A stretch of DNA of 64,000 bases from Obrimoposthia wandeli (taxonomy: Eukaryota): positions 124,001 to 188,000 of the forward strand of contig CDROCS010002105.1 of NCBI GenBank assembly GCA_977020255.1, read 5' to 3'. The position numbers and the translations under genes are program-made. Under the pieces are notes generated by a model. That model searched no databases. It saw only the letters and a program-made list of their open reading frames with translations, and was not told where the DNA came from. Below are positions 24,273 to 37,409 of this stretch, piece after piece (positions within the stretch are counted from its first letter, which is position 1; every line of letters begins with the position of its first letter).

Positions 24273-25055
24273 TTACACAGCCATGGCTTCAGGCTGTAAA
24301 TACAGCTGCCATGCATTTTGGTATAGGTTTAATGATTCAGTTCGAAGTTTTGCTATCTGTGCTAATTCAAACTCAGAGATATCGCGCTTTTCTACCATGC
24401 TTGCACGTTCGATACGTTGAATCTCTTCATAAATCTTGTGTTCTTCGCCATTTTTTACCGTAGATATTGCGTCTAAGTGAAGTTGAACTTCTGCAATAAC
24501 TTGGCTTTTTGGCAAGCGTACCAGTAACTTAAAATCACGGTAACCAGAAGCTGTCGGATTTTTAAAACGATTTTTAACCGCAACAACAGACACTTCTTTA
24601 TTCAGCAACTCTAATGACTGCATCAAACTCGGTATATCATTTGCTATTAATGAACATCGTGCCAAATCGGTAATACGATTAGTGTTACCTTGTAACTCAG
24701 TCTTGATTTTTTCTTTAGCGCGTTCTTTCGATTTAACGGCTGGCACCAAAGCTTGAGTATTGGAGTGCAATGCTATTTCTCGTACAAGAAGATCTAATTC
24801 TTGTTGGGCATGTGTTGCCGCATAATACAATTGGTTAAAGTTATTATAAGGCTGGGTAATGTTCTGCTCTGTCCAGTTATTGATGCTATATAGACCACTA
24901 AGGCTACGCTGAAAAGACTTCTTACCTTCTTGTGTTTGGTAGGGAGAAACCTCATAGTCAGAATCTGAATATTGAGGCAATGGTGCAGCGATCGAAGTAC
25001 GACCGAAAACGCAAAGGAGAACGAAGAAAGTACGAAGTACAGATTTCATGTGCAT
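24273..25055 (-). CDS. relV: RelV-type small alarmone synthetase, copy 1
   Basis: KSKERAKEK, DLAR, KNRF, SGYRD, EVQLH synthetase motifs; signal-like N-terminus as in RelV. Confidence 0.85.
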   Translation of the reverse strand: MHMKSVLRTFFVLLCVFGRTSIAAPLPQYSDSDYEVSPYQTQEGKKSFQRSLSGLYSINNWTEQNITQPYNNFNQLYYAATHAQQELDLLVREIALHSNTQALVPAVKSKERAKEKIKTELQGNTNRITDLARCSLIANDIPSLMQSLELLNKEVSVVAVKNRFKNPTASGYRDFKLLVRLPKSQVIAEVQLHLDAISTVKNGEEHKIYEEIQRIERASMVEKRDISEFELAQIAKLRTESLNLYQNAWQLYLQPEAMAV

Positions 25056-25308: not shown

Positions 25309-26091
25309 TTAACTTACTGCCAAGTTAGGCTGTAAATATTGTTGCCAGACATAACTATAAAGATTCAATGACTGATTGCGTAATTGTTTTATTTTTGCTA
25401 ACTCAATCTCATTTAAATGACGATTGGTAGCATTCGCTGTACGTTCAATTTTTTGAATTTGTTCATATAATTGGTGTTCTTTACCATTTTTAATATCAGA
25501 AATACCTTCTAAATGCAGCTGTATCTCTGCAATATGTTGGCTTTGTGGAAGACGAACCAACATTTTTAAATCTCTATAACCTGATTTTGCAGGTTGTTTG
25601 AAACGATTTTTCACTTCCACAATCGTGACTTCTTTACTTAGAAGCTCAAAAGATTGAACCAAACTACTTATGTCACTGGCAACTAACGATCCTCGTGCTA
25701 GATCTGTTAATTTTTGTACATGTCCATTTAATTCAGTTGCTATCTTATATTCGGCTCTGTCTCGTGATTTAACCCCCGGTGACGAAGCACTTGTATTGGT
25801 AATCATCGATGTTTGTTGAATAAGTTGCTCTAATTCATGTTGAGCAAACTGGGCTTGCAGGTAAAGGGAGTCGAGATCATTCAGAGGTTGTATAATGTTC
25901 GGCTGCCTCCACGTTGGGATAGCATAGAGACCACTTAAAGACCCTTGGAAAGCTTTCTTCGACTCTTGTGCTGATGAGGGAAGATCGGATTCTGAATCGT
26001 TGTAATTGGGAACGCTGGCTACAGCGACAGGGCTACGGCCTAAGACAAATAAAAGAACAAAGCAGGTACGAAGTATAGATTTGGTAACCAT
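25309..26091 (-). CDS. relV: RelV-type small alarmone synthetase, copy 2
   Basis: KSRDRAEYK, DLAR, KNRF, SGYRD, EIQLH; start re-called to ATG 26091 (RBS AGAGGAG). Confidence 0.85.
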   Translation of the reverse strand: MVTKSILRTCFVLLFVLGRSPVAVASVPNYNDSESDLPSSAQESKKAFQGSLSGLYAIPTWRQPNIIQPLNDLDSLYLQAQFAQHELEQLIQQTSMITNTSASSPGVKSRDRAEYKIATELNGHVQKLTDLARGSLVASDISSLVQSFELLSKEVTIVEVKNRFKQPAKSGYRDLKMLVRLPQSQHIAEIQLHLEGISDIKNGKEHQLYEQIQKIERTANATNRHLNEIELAKIKQLRNQSLNLYSYVWQQYLQPNLAVS

Positions 26092-26406
26092 TAAAACTCC
26101 TCTAGACACATTACTTTGAGATTAAAACTGCTAAGTAGTGCGAGTTCGGATGAACAACATATCTGTATACTTAAGATATCTGTCTTCATTATCTTGTTTC
26201 AATGGGGGAATAGGTAAAATGAGAGGTTGTAATATTCAGGTTGTGATGTGCTTCCCATCGTGTACATTTTGACTGATTCATATCACTTGAGATCCCCCTT
26301 AAGGTGTAACGGAATATGTCATTATCAATGATGGGTATACCACTTAGCGGTTACCATTGCTTAGTGGTAAACTAACTTTGTTTTCTTATTTATTAATGGA
26401 TGAATT

Positions 26407-27949: not shown

Positions 27950-28951
27950 CTATTTTAAGGTGTAAGGAATACGGACGGTTAGTTGGAAGTCAGGGGCATC
28001 GGCTGTTAACCCTGCAGATGCACCAACATTGACGGTGGTATCACGACTTACAGCATAGTTAGCACCAACAGAAAGGGAGTCTAACTGTAAAACTTTAGCA
28101 TTAAAGTTTTCAATACCGCTAACCTTAGATTTAAAAATTGTTTTGTGGCTTAAGCCAAGGCTAAAGGAGAATCTAGGGTTAACAGCAAAGCCCATACCGG
28201 CACCAAAAGAAATGGTATCTCCTAGATCAATAGATGTTTCTGTGCCTGCTAAATTAACATCATCTTTAATATTCCAGATATAGCTAGTGTTCATGTAAAT
28301 AACAGCAGGATCAATGGGCATTATCATCGTTAAGCCTGGCTCTATGCTGGGAAAGCCTGAGCCAGTTGGTAAATCTTCAGGCGAACCTTCATACGGTGAG
28401 TCGCCCGTAGTGCTTTTGAAGCGTAAACTACCTATCCAATAAGGGGCGGTATTCATATTAAACTGATACTTAAAACCAGCCTCAATATCACCTAAACCAT
28501 TCCCATCTAAGTCAATTAATTTATCTTCGTCTTGGCCTATACCAGCAGAACGCTCAGAAATAGAATCGCTTCTATATATCCAAGGGATTCGCACCTCGAC
28601 TTCTAATCGGTTTGTTATGCCGTAACGACCAGATAGACCAAATGTTAGTGTTGTTCTATCAATATCACTCGCTTGTATTAATCCCACAATTAAAGAGGGG
28701 AGTACCGAGTAACCAACAACAGAGATAGTATTTGAAGAATTTTGCGTATAAGACAGTGAGGAATCTATAACAAATGATCCCCTTGGGGTTAATACGCCTG
28801 GTTGTTCAAAAATATCTGCAACTGTTTGAACACGCTTAGGTTTTTCTTCTTTAGCCTTTTCATTAGGTTCTGCATCCTCAGCTGCAACAACAGCTGTACT
28901 AGAACATAAAGCAAGAAGTGCAATCAGGCTTTTATATTTGAATTCTTTCAC
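27950..28951 (-). CDS. Outer-membrane beta-barrel transporter, FapF-like
   Basis: GTG start with RBS GAGG, signal peptide, RYGITNRLEVEVRIPW, GNGLGDIEAG, LPTGSGF, GLTADAPDF, C-terminal RIPY; divergent from the subunit genes. Confidence 0.8.
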   Translation of the reverse strand: MKEFKYKSLIALLALCSSTAVVAAEDAEPNEKAKEEKPKRVQTVADIFEQPGVLTPRGSFVIDSSLSYTQNSSNTISVVGYSVLPSLIVGLIQASDIDRTTLTFGLSGRYGITNRLEVEVRIPWIYRSDSISERSAGIGQDEDKLIDLDGNGLGDIEAGFKYQFNMNTAPYWIGSLRFKSTTGDSPYEGSPEDLPTGSGFPSIEPGLTMIMPIDPAVIYMNTSYIWNIKDDVNLAGTETSIDLGDTISFGAGMGFAVNPRFSFSLGLSHKTIFKSKVSGIENFNAKVLQLDSLSVGANYAVSRDTTVNVGASAGLTADAPDFQLTVRIPYTLK

Positions 28952-29078
28952 GATTTCCTCACTTCAATACAAAGGTAGTCCATAAAAAAATGTAAGTCGG
29001 TAACAAAATAATACCAACCAATAGAAAAAGCGTAGTAGATGATAAGTTAAGCTGTTAGTTATTTGTCTCAGAATAATG

Positions 29079-29092
29079 TCTTATATCTGAGA
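29079..29092. promoter_or_regulatory. Putative VpsR-type operator
   Basis: TCTTA-TATC-TGAGA, 9/10 match to TCTCA-N4-TGAGA, with an extra TGTCTCA half-site at 29064, inside the AT-rich divergent promoter region. Confidence 0.45.
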
Positions 29093-29326
29093 TGGAGGTG
29101 AAACAATCTTATAAATGATAAATGTAATATTTATGAGTCATTGTTTTTTTATTTGGAATATTTAATATATAAATTATAGAAATAAAAATTAATTTTTTAT
29201 ATTTAAAAAATTTCGAAGTTATTAAAAATAATACAAGGATATAATTTTACAACACTACTATTAAGTTATCTCGCAGCACATTGCGGGTAACAATAAAAAA
29301 ACAACAAACATATTTGGAGTAACACT

Positions 29327-30043
29327 ATGCGTAAAACTAATCTCGCACTTCTTGTGGCAATTGTTGTTAGTTCACCAATGGCATTCGCTTACGGTGGTGG
29401 TGGCGGCTATAACCAACAGGCACCAGTAAATTCAGACAATAATAATACTGATGTATATAAGGATAACGTCGGTAATAAAGACATCACATATACTTCAGAA
29501 GATAGCCATGACGTAAATCTCGATGTTGATGATTCATTTAATCATGAATCGAATTACGATAGCACGAAAGATATTGAGACAAATTATACCAAAAATGTGA
29601 GTCATGATTATGATAATGACACATTAAGAATGAAAAATATCAATAACGACGAAAGTTACTACAACCAAGATAACAGCGATAATAGTACAGTTTGGAAAGA
29701 GACTCTTAATGTAACAGAAGATATTAGCTGGGATGTTAATTTAGAAGAGAACCATTATGTATCAACCTCTTATTTAAGTGGTTATGTTACTGACAACGAA
29801 GTGACATATGGTGGTGCATGTTGTGACGGTGATGGTGGCAGTGGAGGTTATGGTCATCGTGGCGGTTATAATGATCATGATGATGATGGTGGAATGGGCG
29901 GTGACTTCTTTGTTGACCAGTCTAACTCTATGATGGATTCATTTAATGGTTCTTCCGGTATCAGCATGGCTGGTCAAAATGCGGGTAATAACTCAATGCT
30001 TCAGCAAAGTGCTAGCACAAATGCTGTTCTTGTTGGTTATTAG
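29327..30043 (+). CDS. Secreted D/N/S/T-rich putative fibre/amyloid subunit A
   Basis: Sec signal; DSFN/DSH/DNSDNS motifs; TYGGACCD; C-terminal SFNGSSGISMAGQNAGNNSMLQQ Fap-like repeat. Confidence 0.75.
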   Translation: MRKTNLALLVAIVVSSPMAFAYGGGGGYNQQAPVNSDNNNTDVYKDNVGNKDITYTSEDSHDVNLDVDDSFNHESNYDSTKDIETNYTKNVSHDYDNDTLRMKNINNDESYYNQDNSDNSTVWKETLNVTEDISWDVNLEENHYVSTSYLSGYVTDNEVTYGGACCDGDGGSGGYGHRGGYNDHDDDGGMGGDFFVDQSNSMMDSFNGSSGISMAGQNAGNNSMLQQSASTNAVLVGY

Positions 30044-30086
30044 ATAATTACTGGGAATTACTGAGTGTAATTCTCAGGAGGATGTT

Positions 30087-30419
30087 ATGAAATATTTAAC
30101 ACTGATAGTTGCAGTATTCATTACCTGTAGTGCAGCAGCAGATGAGTTGGATATTCTAGCAAGTTCTGAAATGCTAAGCGATACATCTATGAATCAATCT
30201 CGTGGCGGTCAATATGAGCTGAACATAGATGTAATGCATGCTGAATCAGACATGTACGGTGATGTTCAAGGAAATGGTGCCTACAATAATACGACAGGTG
30301 CCAATATGATAACTGAAGGTGCATTTGGTGAATCATCTGGTATTTTTAATGTGGTTCAAAATACTGGTAATAATGTTCTCATCCAAAATGCAACTGTAGT
30401 TAACTTGACGTTGAAGTAA
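30087..30419 (+). CDS. Secreted minor/nucleator-like subunit
   Basis: Signal; LSDTSMNQSRGG; AFGESSGIFNVVQNTGNNVLIQNATVVN. Confidence 0.75.
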   Translation: MKYLTLIVAVFITCSAAADELDILASSEMLSDTSMNQSRGGQYELNIDVMHAESDMYGDVQGNGAYNNTTGANMITEGAFGESSGIFNVVQNTGNNVLIQNATVVNLTLK

Positions 30420-30623
30420 ACTGTTAGTGTATCTAAGCTGACATATGAATAATATGTCAGCGACGACTCTACAGACCATTAATTAGGGGTTGTTTTATAG
30501 GGACTAACATCATTACTTAATACATGATTGCTTTTTATAATTAGCATTGTGTCTAATAGATATAATTAATAAACCCTGTGTTCTAGTTATTACAATAATA
30601 AATGACATATTCGGAGTAATATC

Positions 30624-31262
30624 ATGCGTAAATCAAATATCGCACTATTAGTAGCAGTTGTATTCGCATCACCACTAGCATTAGCTAATCCACCAGTTAC
30701 ACAAGACAGTTATAATACCGATAAGGTAATAGAAAATTCTTATAATACAGATCTTGACGCTGATAAGGTGGATAGCCACAACAAAGACGTTTATGTGACA
30801 AATGTTGGCAACACCGAATACAATAAGACGAAAGATTATACAAATGAAAGCAATACTGAAATCGATTACTCGAAGACGAGTGATAATGATACATTAACCA
30901 TGAAAAATATTGGTAATGATAGAAGCACCTGGAAACAAGATAACAGTGATAACTCGGCGAAAGCAACTTATGACACTACGATGGACTACTCTGAAACTTG
31001 GGATGTCAACGTAGAGATTGATACGTATATGTCGGCTGCTGAGTTAGATGGCGCAGTTATGGGCTCAAGTGTGACATATGGTGGTGCATGTTGCGATAGT
31101 GGTGGCAGTGGAGCAGGTGGTGATTTTACAGTTAATCAAACGAACTCTATGTCTAACTCTTTTGGTGATGCATCTGGTATCAGTATTGCGGGTCAGAACG
31201 TAGGTAATAACGCGTTGGTACAGCAAACTACAAGTACAAATGCGGCTTTGGTTGCCCCTTAG
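30624..31262 (+). CDS. Secreted D/N/S/T-rich putative fibre/amyloid subunit B (paralogue of 29327)
   Basis: Signal; DSYNTD/NSYNTD/DSHN/DNSDNS; TYGGACCD; SFGDASGISIAGQNVGNNALVQQ. Confidence 0.75.
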   Translation: MRKSNIALLVAVVFASPLALANPPVTQDSYNTDKVIENSYNTDLDADKVDSHNKDVYVTNVGNTEYNKTKDYTNESNTEIDYSKTSDNDTLTMKNIGNDRSTWKQDNSDNSAKATYDTTMDYSETWDVNVEIDTYMSAAELDGAVMGSSVTYGGACCDSGGSGAGGDFTVNQTNSMSNSFGDASGISIAGQNVGNNALVQQTTSTNAALVAP

Positions 31263-31416
31263 TCAATGAACTTATTTGTTAAGGGCCTTAGGGCCCTTAT
31301 TAATTTATTAAAATTTTTACAAATGAGACAAAAATTTTAATAAATTAATTAATAATTATACACAAGAAATAAATTGTCTATTAATGACTACATTTTTGTA
31401 CATATAACAGAATGGT

Positions 31417-32097
31417 ATGTTTATGAAAACGTCACTGTTTATTATTGTTAGTATTTTTCTGAGTACATCAGTTTCTGCTCTTGACTATTTTCCGAGTAGA
31501 GGTGCATATAATGTAAAAGTTAAAAGCTACCAAGAGAAGGTTTTTGGCGATGTACAACGGCAACAATATGATTTTAGTTGTGGCTCTGCGGCTGTTGCAT
31601 CGTTATTAACGTATCATTATGGTTTAGAAACATCCGAAAATTCCGTGTTTGAATATATGTTCAAAAACGGAGATAAAGAAAAAATAGAGCAACAGGGTTT
31701 TTCCATGTTAGATATGAAAAACTATCTGGAAGCTCAAGGGTTAACGGCAAATGGGTATAAATTACCGTTAATGAAATTTAAAAAATTAGGCATTCCAGGT
31801 ATTACAGTTGTAAATTTTGATGGCTATATGCATTTTGTTGTAATTAAAGGTATAAATAGCAGTCAAGTTATACTAGGTGATCCTTCTAGAGGGACGCTAA
31901 CAATGGATATTGATGATTTCAAAGAGGGTTACAAGGGCTTAGTTTTATTAGTGAAAAATAACGTCAAAATTGGTAAGGAAAGTTTCATAAAACAAGAAAA
32001 TTATAGTATTTACACGCCCTCTCCTATTTCAGAGGCTGTAACTAGAGAATCACTTGCAACCTTTAGTATTACTCTACCTGGGGCAAATGATTATTAG
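31417..32097 (+). CDS. Secreted stand-alone C39 cysteine peptidase, FapD-like
   Basis: Signal; RQQYDFSCGSAA (Cys), HFVV (His), GDP (Asp); no ABC domain. Confidence 0.9.
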   Translation: MFMKTSLFIIVSIFLSTSVSALDYFPSRGAYNVKVKSYQEKVFGDVQRQQYDFSCGSAAVASLLTYHYGLETSENSVFEYMFKNGDKEKIEQQGFSMLDMKNYLEAQGLTANGYKLPLMKFKKLGIPGITVVNFDGYMHFVVIKGINSSQVILGDPSRGTLTMDIDDFKEGYKGLVLLVKNNVKIGKESFIKQENYSIYTPSPISEAVTRESLATFSITLPGANDY

Positions 32098-32105
32098 AGG
32101 CTAGT

Positions 32106-32618
32106 ATGAAAAAAACATCAAAATGGTTTTTTGCATCTGTAATAGGAGGTGCGGCCTTTTGGGCCAATGCATCAATAAATTACGAGACTATAGATGATTT
32201 TGGTTTACTTACGATCAGTGAAACTGAAATGTCATCGATAAGAGGTGGTTTTGTATCAATTAATGATACGATAATTAATATTGGATTATCTATCTCGACG
32301 GCACTAAATGGTGAAACGGTATTCAGTTCCTATATTGCAGATCTAACGATCGATAATGGGGTGTTAACATCATCATTACCAGAAGAGACAGTGAAGCCAA
32401 TAAGTGTAGTCCAAAATGGTGGAGACAGTAGTAATCAAGCACCAACAACGATAAATATTGATGCTGGAAGCATTGCTAGTATTATTCAAAATACAGTTGA
32501 TAATACAACGATACGCGTCGAAACGCAGCTAGATATACAGGCTGATGTTAATAGCTTTCTTGAACGACAAGTTATTATTAATAGTATAGAAAACTCAATT
32601 TTGTATTCCACGTATTGA
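32106..32618 (+). CDS. Secreted FapE-like accessory subunit
   Basis: Signal; ISETEMSSIRGG; IIQNTVDNTTI. Confidence 0.7.
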   Translation: MKKTSKWFFASVIGGAAFWANASINYETIDDFGLLTISETEMSSIRGGFVSINDTIINIGLSISTALNGETVFSSYIADLTIDNGVLTSSLPEETVKPISVVQNGGDSSNQAPTTINIDAGSIASIIQNTVDNTTIRVETQLDIQADVNSFLERQVIINSIENSILYSTY

Positions 32619-32644
32619 TTAAAAAGATTGTTTTTTTCACCTTT

Positions 32645-32679
32645 AAAAAGGCATAGTAATTAATTACTATGCCTTTTTT
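32645..32679 (+). terminator. Terminator closing the peptidase/FapE-like unit
   Basis: AAAAAGGCATAGTAAT-TA-ATTACTATGCCTTTTTT. Confidence 0.85.
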
Positions 32680-32890
32680 GTTGTATTGGTGGCGATATTG
32701 ATAAAAATATTGATAATTTATTATAAATTAGAGGAACTTTTTAAAACAAATAAGTTGCTGATTTAGTAAGCCTATTTTTAATATTGATTAAAATGTCGCA
32801 TAAACAGATGGATAAAGAGTCATTTTCTTACTTCTGATACCCTACATACGTGTCATTTATTGCCTATATTCTTAATACATCAAAAATAAT

Positions 32891-34267
32891 ATGTACATTG
32901 ATAGCGTGGTGATTTCGATGGTGACTCAATCTAAAAATAAATCAATAAATGGTCGTCTTGTTGCAATTGGTTGTAATTATGAACCTTGGATAGCACTTCT
33001 TGAACAATCAGGATGGAAAACGCATTGCTGTTATGACCTTAGAACAGCAGATGCAATACTGGAAGAGTACAGCCCATGTATATGCATTGTTGATTTAAGC
33101 AATAACGATTTTAGCTTAAATAGTATTTCTTTGAGGGCAAATAAAACTAAACAAGTACGTTGGATTGCACTAATTAAAAAAGAGCAGCTAGAAACGGATG
33201 CTATCTGTCAGTTTATTAATAATTATTGTGTCGATTACTTTTCAATGCCAATCCCTAGCACCTTACTGTTAGACACTGTCGGGCATCAGCTTGGAATGCT
33301 TGAGATAGATGCGAAATCTTGGGTTGAGGTAACGTCACAGCACGATATGGGGCTGTATGGGGACTCTAAATCGATAAAGCAGCTTCGTGATATGGTTAGG
33401 CGTGTAGCATCAACTGAAGTGAATGTTTTTCTCACGGGTGAAAATGGTACAGGCAAAGAGCTTATCGCTAAATCAATTCATAACTTGTCTAAGCGTAAAA
33501 ATGCACCTTTTATTAATGTTAATTGCGGATCACTAACCTCAGATGAAGAGAAAATTGCTTTTTTAAATTCGACAACAAAACTTCATGATGATGAAAAGTC
33601 CAAATTTAATGGTACTATTTTGCTCGATAATGTTGAAGAGTTGTCTAAAGAACTACAAGATGAATTGCTAAGATATTTACAGGCACCTGCGGGGGAGTCT
33701 ATAGATGAAAATACAAATTGTGATATACGTATTGTTGTTTCATCAAGTGCAGATCTTGAAACTGCAGTTGCTAACGGTGAATTTAGTAAAGAGCTCTACT
33801 ATCGCTTGAATGTGTTCCATATTAAAGTGCCGACTCTTAGAGAACGCGGTTCTGATATTTATCTTTTAGCAGAAAAGTTTTTAAATCAGTTTTCTAATGA
33901 ATATAATACATTAGCATCGAGTTTCTCAGAAGATTCTAAGCAGTTACTGTTACGCTATAGCTGGCCTGGTAATGTTAGAGAGTTAATGAATCAAGTAAAG
34001 CGTGCAGCATTGCTTGCTGAGGGCAATGAAGTAAAAGCGGAACATTTTGATTTGCCAAGCAAATCTAACTTCAAGCAAAGCTTGCGTAATATTAAAGATG
34101 AAGCGGAAAAAGATGTATTAGTTGCTGTACTAGAAACACACCGTGGTCAAGTTGCTTCAGCAGCTAAAGATTTGGGTGTATCTCGTGCGACGATGTATCG
34201 TCTATTAAATAAACATAATATAGTTCCTGATGTTCGATATTATAATAATGGACAACTTGGTGAATAG
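32891..34267 (+). CDS. Atypical enhancer-binding protein, VpsR/CpsR-like regulator
   Basis: YEPW..GW, CIVDLS, KQVRW, GHQLGML N-domain typical of VpsR; Walker A GENGTGKE; no GAFTGA loop; Walker B LLDNV; HTH AAKDLGVSRATMYRLLNKH. Confidence 0.85.
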   Translation: MYIDSVVISMVTQSKNKSINGRLVAIGCNYEPWIALLEQSGWKTHCCYDLRTADAILEEYSPCICIVDLSNNDFSLNSISLRANKTKQVRWIALIKKEQLETDAICQFINNYCVDYFSMPIPSTLLLDTVGHQLGMLEIDAKSWVEVTSQHDMGLYGDSKSIKQLRDMVRRVASTEVNVFLTGENGTGKELIAKSIHNLSKRKNAPFINVNCGSLTSDEEKIAFLNSTTKLHDDEKSKFNGTILLDNVEELSKELQDELLRYLQAPAGESIDENTNCDIRIVVSSSADLETAVANGEFSKELYYRLNVFHIKVPTLRERGSDIYLLAEKFLNQFSNEYNTLASSFSEDSKQLLLRYSWPGNVRELMNQVKRAALLAEGNEVKAEHFDLPSKSNFKQSLRNIKDEAEKDVLVAVLETHRGQVASAAKDLGVSRATMYRLLNKHNIVPDVRYYNNGQLGE

Positions 34268-34793: not shown

Positions 34794-36236
34794 CTAGTGG
34801 CTGGGTATAAATAAATAGTCCTTATGTTTTAACGCAGTTTGTTGACTTGTCGCATTTTGTAGAGAAAATATTTGTTTGTAAACTGTATAATAGCGATTGA
34901 TATTGCCCACGTAAGTAATGGGTTCAAGCCCGACATGTTTACGTGTTATTACCTCAACATTGTTAAACCATTTTGTACTGTCATAGCCTTGCTCTTCTGC
35001 AAGTCTACGCATTCTATTTATACGTCCTGGTCCTGCATTATAGCTTGCTAAAGCAAAAAACATTTTATTTCTATCATCGATCTCGTCTGTGTTGTAATAC
35101 CTATTCAATATGAAGTCCATATATTTTACGCCAGCATGAATATTGTTATCTATATTATAGATATTTGAAATGTTGATATAAGGTTCTTTTGCTGTTTGTG
35201 GGAGAACTTGCATAATACCAACAGCACCAGCATGTGAACGCTTAGATTGATCAAATTGAGACTCTTGAAAAGCTTGTGCTGCAGTTAATAACCAATTCAT
35301 ATCATACATGTTACTGTAACGAATAAAGCGCTTCTCAAGTTTTTTGAATTTCGCTATATTCGTCGCACTGACCACTTTTTGAAACCATGCTTTACTGTTT
35401 AAATAACGATTGAAAATTATATTGCCATTAAGTGTCCCATATCGATTTTTTTCAATAAAGTTGTTAACCAATTGTGCTAACTCTGGACTGTCTTTTCTAA
35501 AGGCCCAACCGATTGTCCCCCCTTTTCTGATAGGGAAATCAGTGTGCATTTGTAAATCATCAGTCACTAAATCCCAGAACTCTGCTTTATGATTATCCAA
35601 CACCGTCATAGGGATAATTTTTTGCTGGATCATCTGTAATAATTCATAGTCTTGAAGCGTTTCTTCAATGAAGTGTACATACATTGTTTCAAGGCCTTGT
35701 TTAGCTAGTTTTTTATTAATGCGGTTTACACTTCGGTAGTAACTAGAGCTAGCTCTAATCCAAACATTTTTTTTAGATAAATCTTTTAATTGTATGATGG
35801 GGCTTTCATCTGAATGGGTAATAAAAATTTCATTGATATTACTGAGAATAGGAGAGCTAAAATCAACGGTTTTTTTTCGTTGATGTGTAATGGTTAAATT
35901 TGCCGCAACGATGTCGCCAACTCCGGCCTGAAGCGCAGGAAGTAATTGATCTCGATTGATAGGAATAATTTGCAAATGCAGCTTTTGTTTCGTGCTGTTT
36001 AGTACGTGTTGTTCAAACAACAACAGCATTTCAGAGGTTATACCTTTTGGGTGACCTTTATCTAGGTAATAAAAACCAAGGTCGGCAGATACAAGTATTC
36101 TGATTACACCATGCTCGCTCATTTGAGTCAGATCACCAGTAAATTTTGTGTTGGTAATCGGAGATACTTCGAGTGCTAACGATGTTGAAATGAAAGCATT
36201 AAAGCAGAGTAATGCGATGAAGAACCTTTTTAGCAT
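34794..36236 (-). CDS. MltF-like lytic transglycosylase (substrate-binding domain plus SLT domain)
   Basis: GDIVAANLTIT; AFQESQF (catalytic E), GAVGIMQV, ASYNAGPG. Confidence 0.85.
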   Translation of the reverse strand: MLKRFFIALLCFNAFISTSLALEVSPITNTKFTGDLTQMSEHGVIRILVSADLGFYYLDKGHPKGITSEMLLLFEQHVLNSTKQKLHLQIIPINRDQLLPALQAGVGDIVAANLTITHQRKKTVDFSSPILSNINEIFITHSDESPIIQLKDLSKKNVWIRASSSYYRSVNRINKKLAKQGLETMYVHFIEETLQDYELLQMIQQKIIPMTVLDNHKAEFWDLVTDDLQMHTDFPIRKGGTIGWAFRKDSPELAQLVNNFIEKNRYGTLNGNIIFNRYLNSKAWFQKVVSATNIAKFKKLEKRFIRYSNMYDMNWLLTAAQAFQESQFDQSKRSHAGAVGIMQVLPQTAKEPYINISNIYNIDNNIHAGVKYMDFILNRYYNTDEIDDRNKMFFALASYNAGPGRINRMRRLAEEQGYDSTKWFNNVEVITRKHVGLEPITYVGNINRYYTVYKQIFSLQNATSQQTALKHKDYLFIPSH

Positions 36237-36281: not shown

Positions 36282-37409
36282 TTAGAGTAATGAAATGGGT
36301 GCCGATGCTGCTTTGTATTGATTGCGTCCTGCTTCTTTCGCTTTGTAGAGTTGCTCGTCCGCTTCTTGCACTAGTTGCTCTGGCCCCTTCTGATCTTTCC
36401 ATGTTGTTATACCTTGGCTTAATGTTACGAAATTACTTACGCTAGAAGATGGGTGCAGTATGGCTTCTTGTTGTAAGCTGTTATTAATACGTTTAGCGAC
36501 TTTCTTGGCACCCTCTAAGTGGGTGTTGGGTAGGATAATAACAAACTCCTCACCACCATAACGTGAAACAGAATCTGATGTACGCAATAGGCTTCTTTGT
36601 AAGATGCATGCAACACGTTTTAAGCATAAATCACCAGCAGGGTGACCAAGGTTATCGTTGTAATGTTTAAAATGGTCAATATCAATTAAGATAACAGACA
36701 GCGATGAATGATTACGTTTTGCTAAATGAAAATGTTTATCTATTTCATATTCGAAAAATCGTCTGTTATAAAGGTTTGTTAATTGATCTTTGGTTGCTAA
36801 GTCAGACAGTTTTTTTACTAGCCGTTGATTTTCGTGGTCCTTTTCAATACTTTTATAAAACCAGCGATATAACGTTCTACGACCTGTTTCTATAATAATG
36901 CAGCTAGCCAGTGCTTTTTCTATCGGTAATAACAGCAGATGCCCAGCATCAATATAGTTTGCCCAACTACTTATCAATAAAACGGGCAATATTGCTGCGT
37001 ATACGGCGGGGCGGAGAGCATAGAACCCTAATAACGAGACCATCATGAGTAAATCTGAGGTTATTTCAGCGCTGGCCCACATGTGCCCAATAAAAGCGAT
37101 GTGGTAAATAGCTAATGCCCAACTTATGCCAAATAATGAGGCATAAAGTATGGCTATTTTACGCCATCCTTTAGGAGGTGTTTTTGAGTGGTAAAGAGCC
37201 ATTCCTATTAAATAGACAACCGCTTGAAATGAGAATTGAGGCCAAGAACGATCTAGATATAAGGCTGTTTCCTTAATGTTATTTAGCCAAATAGAAGTCA
37301 CAAGCATGAGTAAAAAGGCAAGAGAGAGAGTTGCCGCCCAACGAAAGCCAATGCGTATGTTTCTGTAGATCGAGTCGTCTAACTGTTTAGTTAATGTTTG
37401 CTCATCCAT
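36282..37409 (-). CDS. Membrane-anchored diguanylate cyclase
   Basis: N-terminal TM helices; DQLTNLYNRR, DIDHFK, I-site RTSD, active site GGEEF. Confidence 0.9.
   Translation of the reverse strand: MDEQTLTKQLDDSIYRNIRIGFRWAATLSLAFLLMLVTSIWLNNIKETALYLDRSWPQFSFQAVVYLIGMALYHSKTPPKGWRKIAILYASLFGISWALAIYHIAFIGHMWASAEITSDLLMMVSLLGFYALRPAVYAAILPVLLISSWANYIDAGHLLLLPIEKALASCIIIETGRRTLYRWFYKSIEKDHENQRLVKKLSDLATKDQLTNLYNRRFFEYEIDKHFHLAKRNHSSLSVILIDIDHFKHYNDNLGHPAGDLCLKRVACILQRSLLRTSDSVSRYGGEEFVIILPNTHLEGAKKVAKRINNSLQQEAILHPSSSVSNFVTLSQGITTWKDQKGPEQLVQEADEQLYKAKEAGRNQYKAASAPISLL

Follow-up and report, generated by a model that had tools for sequence, protein, structure and literature searches.

A probable Photobacterium-type secretion locus related to Fap, with a coil-less FapF-like barrel and predicted double-glycine leaders

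The closest well-described relatives of the locus reported here are the Fap systems of Pseudomonas. FapB, FapC and FapE, which carry N/Q-rich motifs, occur in the fibres, and the periplasmic coiled coil of the outer-membrane barrel FapF is critical for secretion of FapC, a construct lacking the coil being stably plugged in vitro (PMC5557850). The COG4313 channels and FapF are structurally related (PMC6173800). The peptidase FapD is periplasmic and required for secretion, and the N terminus of FapE is processed and absent from the mature protein; what FapD itself cuts is not yet known (PMC5557850, PMC6173800). In a preprint dated October 2026, FapD is described only as 'involved in precursor processing' (10.64898/2026.10.01.755530). 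Absence of fapA is the commonest natural variant of fap operons (PMC3792158), and Dueholm et al. (2013) described in Vibrio brasiliensis a fapBCDEF operon without fapA and with a single-repeat FapB, fapF being often separate (PMC3792158). Here we analyse a locus at positions 27950-34267 of a stretch of 64,000 nucleotides (hereafter the window; contig CDROCS010002105.1, positions 124,001-188,000), which on balance is probably a Fap-related system, in the form found in Photobacterium, that secretes an extracellular protein fibre or matrix across the outer membrane and assembles it.

A preliminary description of the window had proposed a divergent Fap-like secretion system of seven open reading frames (ORFs), the coordinates of which were all confirmed. 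Judged by reading the N termini, the barrel and five other proteins begin with Sec-type signals of typical pattern, as had been proposed for the latter five. Evidence for the Fap reading, direct for the machinery and indirect for the subunits, comes from matches of the barrel to FapF and of the peptidase to FapD, a weak match to FapE, and an indirect link through the subunit repeat. Every protein of the locus has its nearest relatives in Photobacterium profundum, P. frigidiphilum and P. indicum (89-98% identity), which places the window in a Photobacterium of this group. Like Pseudomonas, the locus would encode a plugged FapF-type barrel with a PTG motif, a C39 peptidase that has a catalytic Cys and reaches the periplasm through Sec, a weakly FapE-like protein whose gene comes after the peptidase gene, and subunits with N/Q/G-rich Fap-type repeats, in the order subunit-subunit-peptidase-FapE-barrel. 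It differs in that FapA and the approximately 80-residue coiled coil plus linker of the barrel are missing, that each subunit has one repeat whereas FapB and FapC have about three imperfect ones, that the large subunit is duplicated and has a long acidic region, predicted to be disordered, and a vicinal Cys-Cys, that two proteins carry explicit double-glycine leaders, and that the barrel gene is inverted. Moreover, a VpsR-type gene adjoins the locus, whereas the Pseudomonas fap operon encodes no regulator (PMC6173800). The absence of FapA, the short N terminus of the barrel, the inversion of its gene and the single repeats had all been named correctly in the preliminary description.

The barrel gene (27950-28951, minus strand) encodes a protein of 333 residues with a Sec signal at about residues 1-23. 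In a phmmer search it matched the FapF crystal structures (PDB 5O65-5O68; E 1.5e-34, 5O67 alignment); residues 38-330 were aligned with 14-332 of the crystallised construct, a stretch that takes in the plug region as well as the LPTG motif. The NCBIfam FapF profile was matched over positions 86-418 of 420 (4.9e-46, 157 bits), and matches were also obtained with NCBIfam FilC (2.3e-18, 67 bits) and Pfam Phenol_MetA_deg (1.2e-7). Judged from these alignments, the protein is a FapF homologue, of the 12-stranded plugged barrel type. The periplasmic coiled coil and the linker are absent, the aligned plug region following the point of signal cleavage after no more than about 14 residues. All Vibrionaceae barrels are similarly about 330 residues long, and a relative from Rhodoferax has 428 residues and can be aligned from position 29 of the NCBIfam FapF profile. 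Identity to the window barrel is 50-58% for Vibrio, 43% for Rhodoferax, 38% for Cupriavidus, 29% for the corresponding region of Acinetobacter FilC and 27% for Aeromonas FapF.

The 226-residue product of the gene at 31417-32097 (plus strand; Sec signal) matched Pfam Peptidase_C39 (1.8e-22), and its top NCBIfam match was FapD (9.1e-41, 140 bits), followed by FilB (3.6e-30, 105 bits). Gln49, Cys55, His139 and Asp155 are each at least 97% conserved among 77 homologues, in agreement with the intact Cys-His-Asp noted earlier, and the protein is predicted to be a periplasmic C39 cysteine peptidase of the FapD type. A scan for the barrel using one genome per species detected relatives in at least 142 species, from which the 80 best loci were taken for comparison. 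The barrel and C39 peptidase genes were found together in 76 of these 80 loci, which come from several families, and several of the four exceptions stop at a contig edge.

Directly 3′ of the peptidase gene, in the position of fapE, lies a gene (32106-32618, plus strand; Sec signal) for a protein of 170 residues made up of a leader, a beta-rich N-domain, a degenerate repeat and a C-terminal helix. Canonical FapE has conserved N- and C-terminal regions. FapE was the sole NCBIfam family to match this protein, and the match was weak (E 0.0037, 16.5 bits); among 33 members of the family, five gave E<0.01 with NCBIfam FapE, the best being 5e-4. When the family was compared by hhalign with Aeromonas FapE (E 0.002), the segment E[LM]xxxRGGF was aligned with ELAHLRGRY. 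The AlphaFold2 model was of low confidence (predicted local distance difference test, pLDDT, 61), with a short leader helix at residues 39-45. A Foldseek comparison, one of the checks proposed in the preliminary description, ranked FapE of P. fluorescens first in Swiss-Prot, but at a non-significant level (E 0.27, template modelling score 0.16), and a profile search of the PDB with the FapE-like alignment gave nothing meaningful. Taken together, these comparisons weakly suggest that the 170-residue protein is FapE-like.

A conserved Arg-Gly-Gly follows soon after the Sec signal in both the FapE-like and the small-subunit families, as seen in an alignment of 68 FapE-like and 70 small-subunit homologues from the fetched loci. 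Bacteriocin double-glycine leaders have the consensus LSxxELxxIxGG, with hydrophobic residues at -4, -7, -12 and -15, and such leaders together with C39 peptidases are a hallmark of bacteriocin maturation. The leader of the 170-residue protein is near-canonical, reading LLTISETEMSSIRGG/F (the slash marks the predicted cleavage point), with L-15, I-12, E-8, M-7, I-4, G-2 and G-1; across the 68 loci the FapE-like consensus is LxxLSxxxLSxYRGG/F, hydrophobic at -4, -7, -12 and -15. Small-subunit leaders follow [LIV]Sxxx[ML]xx[SA]RGG/Q, the window copy being MNQSRGG/QYE, and fit the double-glycine pattern at -12, -7, -2 and -1, with Ser or Ala at -4. From these leaders we infer that the 110-residue small subunit and the 170-residue protein are predicted substrates of the C39 peptidase. 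In Aeromonas caviae FapE (L085, 7000-7647), a more canonical FapE, ELAHLRGRY stands where the FapE-like proteins of Vibrionaceae have E[LM]xxxRGGF. A leader-like segment may thus be ancestral to FapE, the second Gly not always having been kept. By eye, the N terminus of Acinetobacter FilA (L088, 5506-6345), AALSAATGQDGINIGIAL, is similar to the part of the FapE-like protein that comprises its leader and first strand, EMSSIRGGFVSINDTIINIGLSI, and on this resemblance FilA may be a counterpart of FapE.

The putative subunits are encoded on the plus strand by the genes for large subunit 1 (29327-30043, 238 residues), the small subunit (30087-30419, 110 residues) and large subunit 2 (30624-31262, 212 residues), each with a Sec signal; 'major' and 'minor' subunit are interpretive labels. 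That the two large subunits are paralogous, as first proposed, was borne out (46% identity, E 3e-50). The motif SF-x3-SGI-x4-QN-x-GNN-x3-Q[QN], which had been given as common to three subunits, is exact in the 238- and 212-residue proteins, in both of which it ends in QQ, but the copy of the 110-residue protein starts with AF. In a six-frame translation of the window the strict form of the motif is confined to the ORFs of these three proteins, and the FapE-like protein has a degenerate copy, GSIASIIQNTVDNTTI. In the large subunits the Sec signal is followed by an acidic region of variable sequence, then by the invariant VTYGGACC, a linker rich in Gly and, at the C terminus, a single Fap-type module. 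Their mature isoelectric point is about 4, and Asp, Asn, Ser and Thr make up 52-55% of the N-terminal part. VTYGGACC, with its vicinal Cys-Cys, is found in all 37 aligned large subunits (in the window at 29751-29834 and 31068-31091). When a structure of large subunit 2 was predicted with AlphaFold2, another of the checks proposed earlier, the 37-sequence alignment yielded no structure (pLDDT 37.7), and the N-terminal regions of the large subunits are predicted to be disordered.

All 65 homologues of large subunit 2 come from Photobacterium and are annotated 'hypothetical'. When the 66 large subunits of 33 Photobacterium loci were placed in a tree, the first- and second-position genes were split almost cleanly (2 changes), and none of 500 shuffles gave a value as low as this. 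The duplication must therefore be old, with both copies retained, and the paralogues probably have distinct roles, e.g. as nucleator and bulk subunit. Outside Photobacterium, the counterparts in Vibrio, Thaumasiovibrio and Rhodoferax are low-complexity proteins of 187-735 residues (680 in Rhodoferax) with the same terminal module.

In the large subunits, homology to the mature form of the 110-residue protein extends over roughly the last 95 residues (hhalign, 95% probability, E 3.4e-8). The 110-residue protein as encoded is made up of a Sec signal, a double-glycine leader and one repeat module, and its gene occupies the slot of fapC in the canonical fapBCDEF. Both its RGG leader and its C terminus, VIQNTGNNVLIQN.T.VNL, are conserved in about 70 loci. 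A profile built from the 110-residue family alignment was searched against 1.84 billion representatives of 50% identity clusters, and matched 1459 clusters at E<=1e-3 and 1002 at E<=1e-10. Most of the matched proteins are 100-180 residues long with the same leader and C terminus, and a few are long proteins, up to 3063 residues, with 7-35 tandem copies of the module (P0191, P0193, P0197, P0259 and P0314). P0191 and P0193 matched the profile with E of about 1e-33 to 1e-34; NCBIfam FapB in turn matches P0191 (6.5e-14) and P0193 (4.7e-12), and FapC matches P0191 (2.3e-12), which also carries a precomputed Pfam PF27129 FapBC assignment. Furthermore, the 212-residue subunit can be aligned directly with several of the P0191 repeats (best E 1e-4, BLAST). 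These multi-repeat intermediates argue, transitively, for homology between the subunit repeat and the Fap repeat. P0191, a FapBC-family protein, also has paired cysteines after its repeats (CSKC, CLC, CGADC); its gene adjoins a gene for a protein of 104 residues, and neither a C39 peptidase nor a barrel gene lies within 7 kb on each side.

The branch to which the locus belongs is common to about 36 Photobacterium species, many Vibrio, some Aeromonadaceae and Betaproteobacteria. In a survey of gene neighbourhoods, such as had been proposed earlier, all Photobacterium loci that are not truncated by a contig end carry the full gene set in the same order, and the flanking DUF2750 and HopJ genes are kept in nearly all of them. 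In Vibrio, Thaumasiovibrio and Parasalinivibrio, one or two large subunit genes are followed by the small subunit, peptidase and FapE-like genes and then by a convergent barrel gene, an order also seen in Oceanisphaera and Zobellella (Aeromonadaceae), Rhodoferax, Cupriavidus and two metagenomic contigs picked from among the matches of the small subunit. The succession of large subunit, small subunit, C39 peptidase, FapE-like protein and barrel mirrors fapB-C-D-E-F. The locus thus represents a distinct branch related to both the canonical Fap and the Fil systems, and closer to Fap when judged by profile score.

Within this branch, the Vibrio loci (L035-L069) share with the window locus coil-less barrels of about 330 residues (50-58% identical), the small subunit, the peptidase, the FapE-like protein and the RGG leaders, but differ in that their single large subunit varies greatly in length, that the barrel gene is convergent downstream, and that no VpsR-type gene is adjacent. 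The V. brasiliensis fapBCDEF, which is not one of the 80 loci retrieved, resembles the window locus in the absence of fapA and in its single-repeat FapB, and its description (PMC3792158) suggests that it belongs to the same branch. By contrast, fapBCDEF of A. caviae (L085), which resembles the window locus in operon order and in the ELAHLRGRY segment that aligns with the window leader, is much nearer to the Pseudomonas models (FapF 371, FapD 249 and FapC 173 bits) and encodes a full-length barrel of 416 residues, 27% identical to that of the window, together with multi-repeat FapB and FapC. The Fil locus of Acinetobacter baumannii (filA-F), a 'putative pilus' system, likewise encodes a C39 peptidase, FilB, and its barrel, FilC, is related to that of the window, but it contains in addition the large genes filE and filF and about 2.9 kb of unannotated sequence after the barrel gene, none of which is present in or beside the window locus, and no Fap-type C-terminal repeat was seen in FilA. 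Curli (CsgA/B, CsgG) are likewise extracellular amyloids with N/Q/G repeats, major and nucleator paralogues and a LuxR-type regulator, CsgD, to which the VpsT-like regulator of the Vibrio loci forms a parallel, but their channel CsgG is unrelated and there is no peptidase. Membership of the curli family was rejected, as none of the ORFs in the locus matched Pfam Curlin_rpt or CsgG.

The preliminary description had regarded the locus as the best candidate for an undescribed system in the window. In the literature searched, no experimental study of this branch was found, nor any mention of Photobacterium together with Fap. In PLSDB records from Photobacterium, Aeromonas and Cupriavidus the matched stretches were without annotation. 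The description had, however, overstated how far the system is undescribed, since the Vibrio fapBCDEF was catalogued in 2013 and the operon type occurs in at least 142 species. The kind of system is thus already known, and the locus is a separate branch of the Fap family.

The last gene of the locus (32891-34267, plus strand) encodes a regulator of 458 residues with the domains Pfam VpsR PF20161 (2.1e-48), Sigma54_activat (AAA+) and HTH_8, which agrees with its earlier designation as VpsR-type. As in V. cholerae VpsR, which has the same VpsR N-terminal, AAA+ and HTH_8 domains, the sigma-54 contact motif has been lost: the GAFTGA region is deleted in the window regulator and in all Photobacterium orthologues, while the regulator of the Rhodoferax locus has GSFTGA. 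V. cholerae VpsR is reported to be without residues needed by sigma-54 activators (PMC6158489). No -24/-12 sigma-54 promoter was found in the intergenic regions of the locus, and the missing GAFTGA and the missing promoter fit VpsR-like activation with sigma-70 (PMC6158489). The window regulator shares 50-53% of its residues with VpsR-related regulators from Aliivibrio, Grimontia and Salinivibrio, and its genomic context is unlike that of the Aliivibrio gene (recJ-prfB-lysS-VpsR-mutH).

The regulator had been taken for the locus's own, which does not hold. Three species that were absent from the results of the barrel and subunit searches, P. angustum, P. aquimaris and P. piscicola, nevertheless have orthologues of it (67-74% identity). 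In P. angustum the gene order is HopJ, DUF2750, a PLD-like gene, the VpsR-like gene and, farther on, a MASE5-GGDEF gene; that is, the backbone is the same as in the window and the PLD-like gene occupies the fap slot. On account of this synteny the idea that the regulator is a locus-specific paralogue was rejected, and the regulator and the neighbouring diguanylate cyclase are backbone genes. The cyclase is encoded at 36282-37409 of the window (minus strand; MASE5-GGDEF) near the VpsR-like gene, its P. angustum equivalent lying at 11564-12670 of L083, and the pairing of regulator and cyclase thus seems to belong to the backbone, whether or not the fibre locus is there. The regulator can nevertheless be kept as a candidate regulator of the locus. 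In 31 Vibrio loci (among L035-L069; e.g. L042, 4950-5603) a VpsT-like regulator (VpsT-like_REC and GerE domains) is encoded 1.3-3 kb from the peptidase gene, divergently from the large-subunit gene in those inspected. No study of this regulator beside the Vibrio loci was found in the literature searched, and a paper on the VpsT paralogue of V. alginolyticus does not mention amyloid or peptidase genes. Moreover, regulators with the VpsR domain, 25-31% identical to that of the window, flank the loci of Parasalinivibrio, Oceanisphaera, Zobellella and Rhodoferax. The operon type is thus recurrently linked, in many taxa, with VpsR- or VpsT-type regulators, i.e. regulators of the kind associated with cyclic diguanylate (c-di-GMP).

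Between the divergent genes for the barrel and large subunit 1 lies an intergenic control region of 24% G+C (28952-29326). It contains, 5′ of the large subunit 1 gene, two conserved blocks (29217-29237 and 29255-29276) and a ribosome-binding site at about 29306-29322, and a sigma-70-like match (29203-29232) overlaps the first block. Allowing up to two mismatches, 14-mers of both blocks recur in 24-28 of 29 divergent Photobacterium species, compared with 0-3 for shuffled sequences, which makes the two blocks candidate promoter or operator elements. The conserved upstream block AGTTATTAMAAATAATA was considered as a locus-wide operator and rejected: the window contains only one exact copy, and looser matches are at chance level. 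Terminator-like hairpins on the plus strand behind the 212-residue subunit gene (31280-31299) and behind the peptidase/FapE-like gene pair (32645-32678) suggest that the locus comprises several transcription units.

On the reading that the locus is a Fap-related export and assembly system, the six non-regulator proteins would cross the inner membrane unfolded via Sec. In the periplasm the C39 peptidase would cut the leaders of the 110-residue subunit and the FapE-like protein behind the conserved Arg-Gly-Gly, the predicted cleavage site, and this processing would license export through the barrel, which could not use the gating platform of Pseudomonas FapF because the coiled coil is missing. 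Once exported, different chains would stack through their single repeat modules into a shared, putative cross-beta core, from which the long acidic N-terminal regions of the large subunits, predicted to be disordered, would project. Expression would probably be tied to c-di-GMP and biofilm control via the adjacent VpsR-type regulator acting with sigma-70, a regulator that exists without the locus too. Tentatively, and with much more reserve than for the Fap relationship itself, we suggest a stronger version, namely that the locus belongs to a large uncharacterised sister branch of Fap, the small-subunit family of which alone comprises about 1,400 clusters at 50% identity across Proteobacteria, and in which removal by a C39 peptidase of true double-glycine leaders from two Sec-exported accessory subunits licenses export via a coil-less FapF barrel, and that the product is a 'bottle-brush' fibre, with an intermolecular cross-beta spine of one repeat per chain and acidic disordered bristles.

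A number of points weigh against this interpretation. Every component falls under its NCBIfam equivalog cut-off (barrel 157 of 700 bits for FapF, peptidase 140 of 330 for FapD, FapE-like protein 16.5 of 250 for FapE); the accepted fap operon of Aeromonas (L085) likewise lies under these cut-offs (FapF 371, FapD 249 and FapE 47 bits), so that they appear to be tuned to close kin of the Pseudomonas proteins. The link to FapE is weak (E 1e-3 to 1e-4; Foldseek E 0.27), the NCBIfam FapB and FapC models do not match the large or small subunits at E up to 10, and profile searches with these subunits gave nothing meaningful among PDB chains. No candidate ORF for FapA was found within the locus, which is not disqualifying, as fapA is so often absent from natural fap operons (PMC3792158). 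Given that Pseudomonas requires the coil, there is no explanation for how a naturally coil-less barrel opens. One repeat per chain stands against the multi-layer single-chain solenoids of FapC, FapB and CsgA, and no fold was predicted, which leaves the cross-beta core putative. Finally, control of the locus by the regulator is a guess from adjacency, the regulator being a backbone gene.

The most serious alternative, which we consider rather unlikely on the whole, is that Fap-derived machinery exports acidic disordered surface or matrix proteins that are not amyloid. The C-terminal module would then act mainly as a signal for export or anchoring, read by the barrel or by the FapE-like protein, and the variable Asp/Asn/Ser/Thr-rich region would be the functional part (e.g. 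in cation binding, hydration or adhesion). This would suit the architecture of the large subunits, each with one module and a long, highly variable low-complexity region, as well as the very acidic character of the mature proteins, the lack of a predicted structure and the location of the module always at the extreme C terminus, like many outer-membrane export signals. Two observations, however, speak for a stacking unit rather than a signal, namely that the module takes up nearly all of the mature 110-residue subunit and that relatives which match the FapB and FapC models have 7-35 copies of it in tandem; in Pseudomonas, moreover, FapB, FapC and FapE with their N/Q-rich motifs are themselves found in the fibres (PMC5557850). 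It is improbable that the locus is instead a Fil-type 'putative pilus' system like filABCDEF of Acinetobacter. FilC (2.3e-18) and FilB (3.6e-30) were indeed matched, the barrel is about as similar to FilC (29%) as to Aeromonas FapF (27%), and the FilA N terminus DGINIGIAL resembles by eye INIGLSI of the FapE-like protein; but the scores are much higher for Fap (FapF 157 against FilC 67 bits, FapD 140 against FilB 105), the extra large Fil genes have no counterpart here, and the gene order matches fapBCDEF. The near-canonical double-glycine leaders and the C39 peptidase could also point to export of bacteriocin-like peptides, in which case the peptidase would mature two leader-bearing small proteins into bioactive peptides and the barrel would be their exit. 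We give this very little credence, as the locus has neither an ABC transporter nor an immunity gene, cleavage would be periplasmic given that the leaders come after a Sec signal, the mature parts are homologous to Fap repeats, and the barrel is a FapF homologue. Hardly credible at all is the idea that the barrel has no link with the other genes but that of proximity, and is a COG4313/MetA-type channel through which hydrophobic compounds are taken up: the Pfam Phenol_MetA_deg match (1.2e-7) and the structural kinship of FapF with COG4313 (PMC6173800) would agree with it, but the barrel accompanies the C39 peptidase in 76 of the 80 loci, and its FapF matches are far stronger than the Pfam match.

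With regard to the surroundings of the locus, the preliminary description had spoken of an AT-rich block. The G+C fraction of the locus is indeed low (0.29-0.39), but the difference is modest and the values are little below those of neighbouring genes: the flanking stretches at 24-28 kb and 34.5-37.5 kb have 0.33-0.40, and 0.44-0.47 is reached farther upstream. Two paralogous proteins of about 260 residues with Sec-type N termini are encoded at 24273-25055 and 25309-26109 (both minus strand) and show weak RelA_SpoT matches (E 2e-5 and 6e-4); P. angustum has the pair in its backbone as well (262 and 260 residues). Exported nucleotidyltransferase-like proteins would be unusual, if that is what they are. 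Between the regulator gene and the GGDEF gene lies a gene for an MltF-like lytic transglycosylase (34794-36236, minus strand; SBP_bac_3 and SLT domains), which was encountered in few of the fetched loci (L001-L003, L021 and L034).

The value of the locus lies in its explicit double-glycine leaders, its naturally coil-less barrel and its single-repeat acidic subunits. In Pseudomonas both the substrate of FapD and the gating of FapF are open questions (PMC5557850, PMC6173800; preprint 10.64898/2026.10.01.755530), and the explicit, conserved predicted cleavage sites together with a barrel that lacks the coil by nature make both questions testable in a locus of six genes. The design of the large subunits, that is, one amyloid-type repeat joined to a long acidic region predicted to be disordered, is unlike the multi-repeat solenoids of FapC and CsgA. 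If the reading as a novel branch is true, the long-sought substrate of FapD would be identified and a different way of building a functional amyloid would be shown. For Photobacterium and many Vibrio, the locus may encode a protein of the biofilm matrix, made in several lineages from genes that lie beside c-di-GMP-type regulators.

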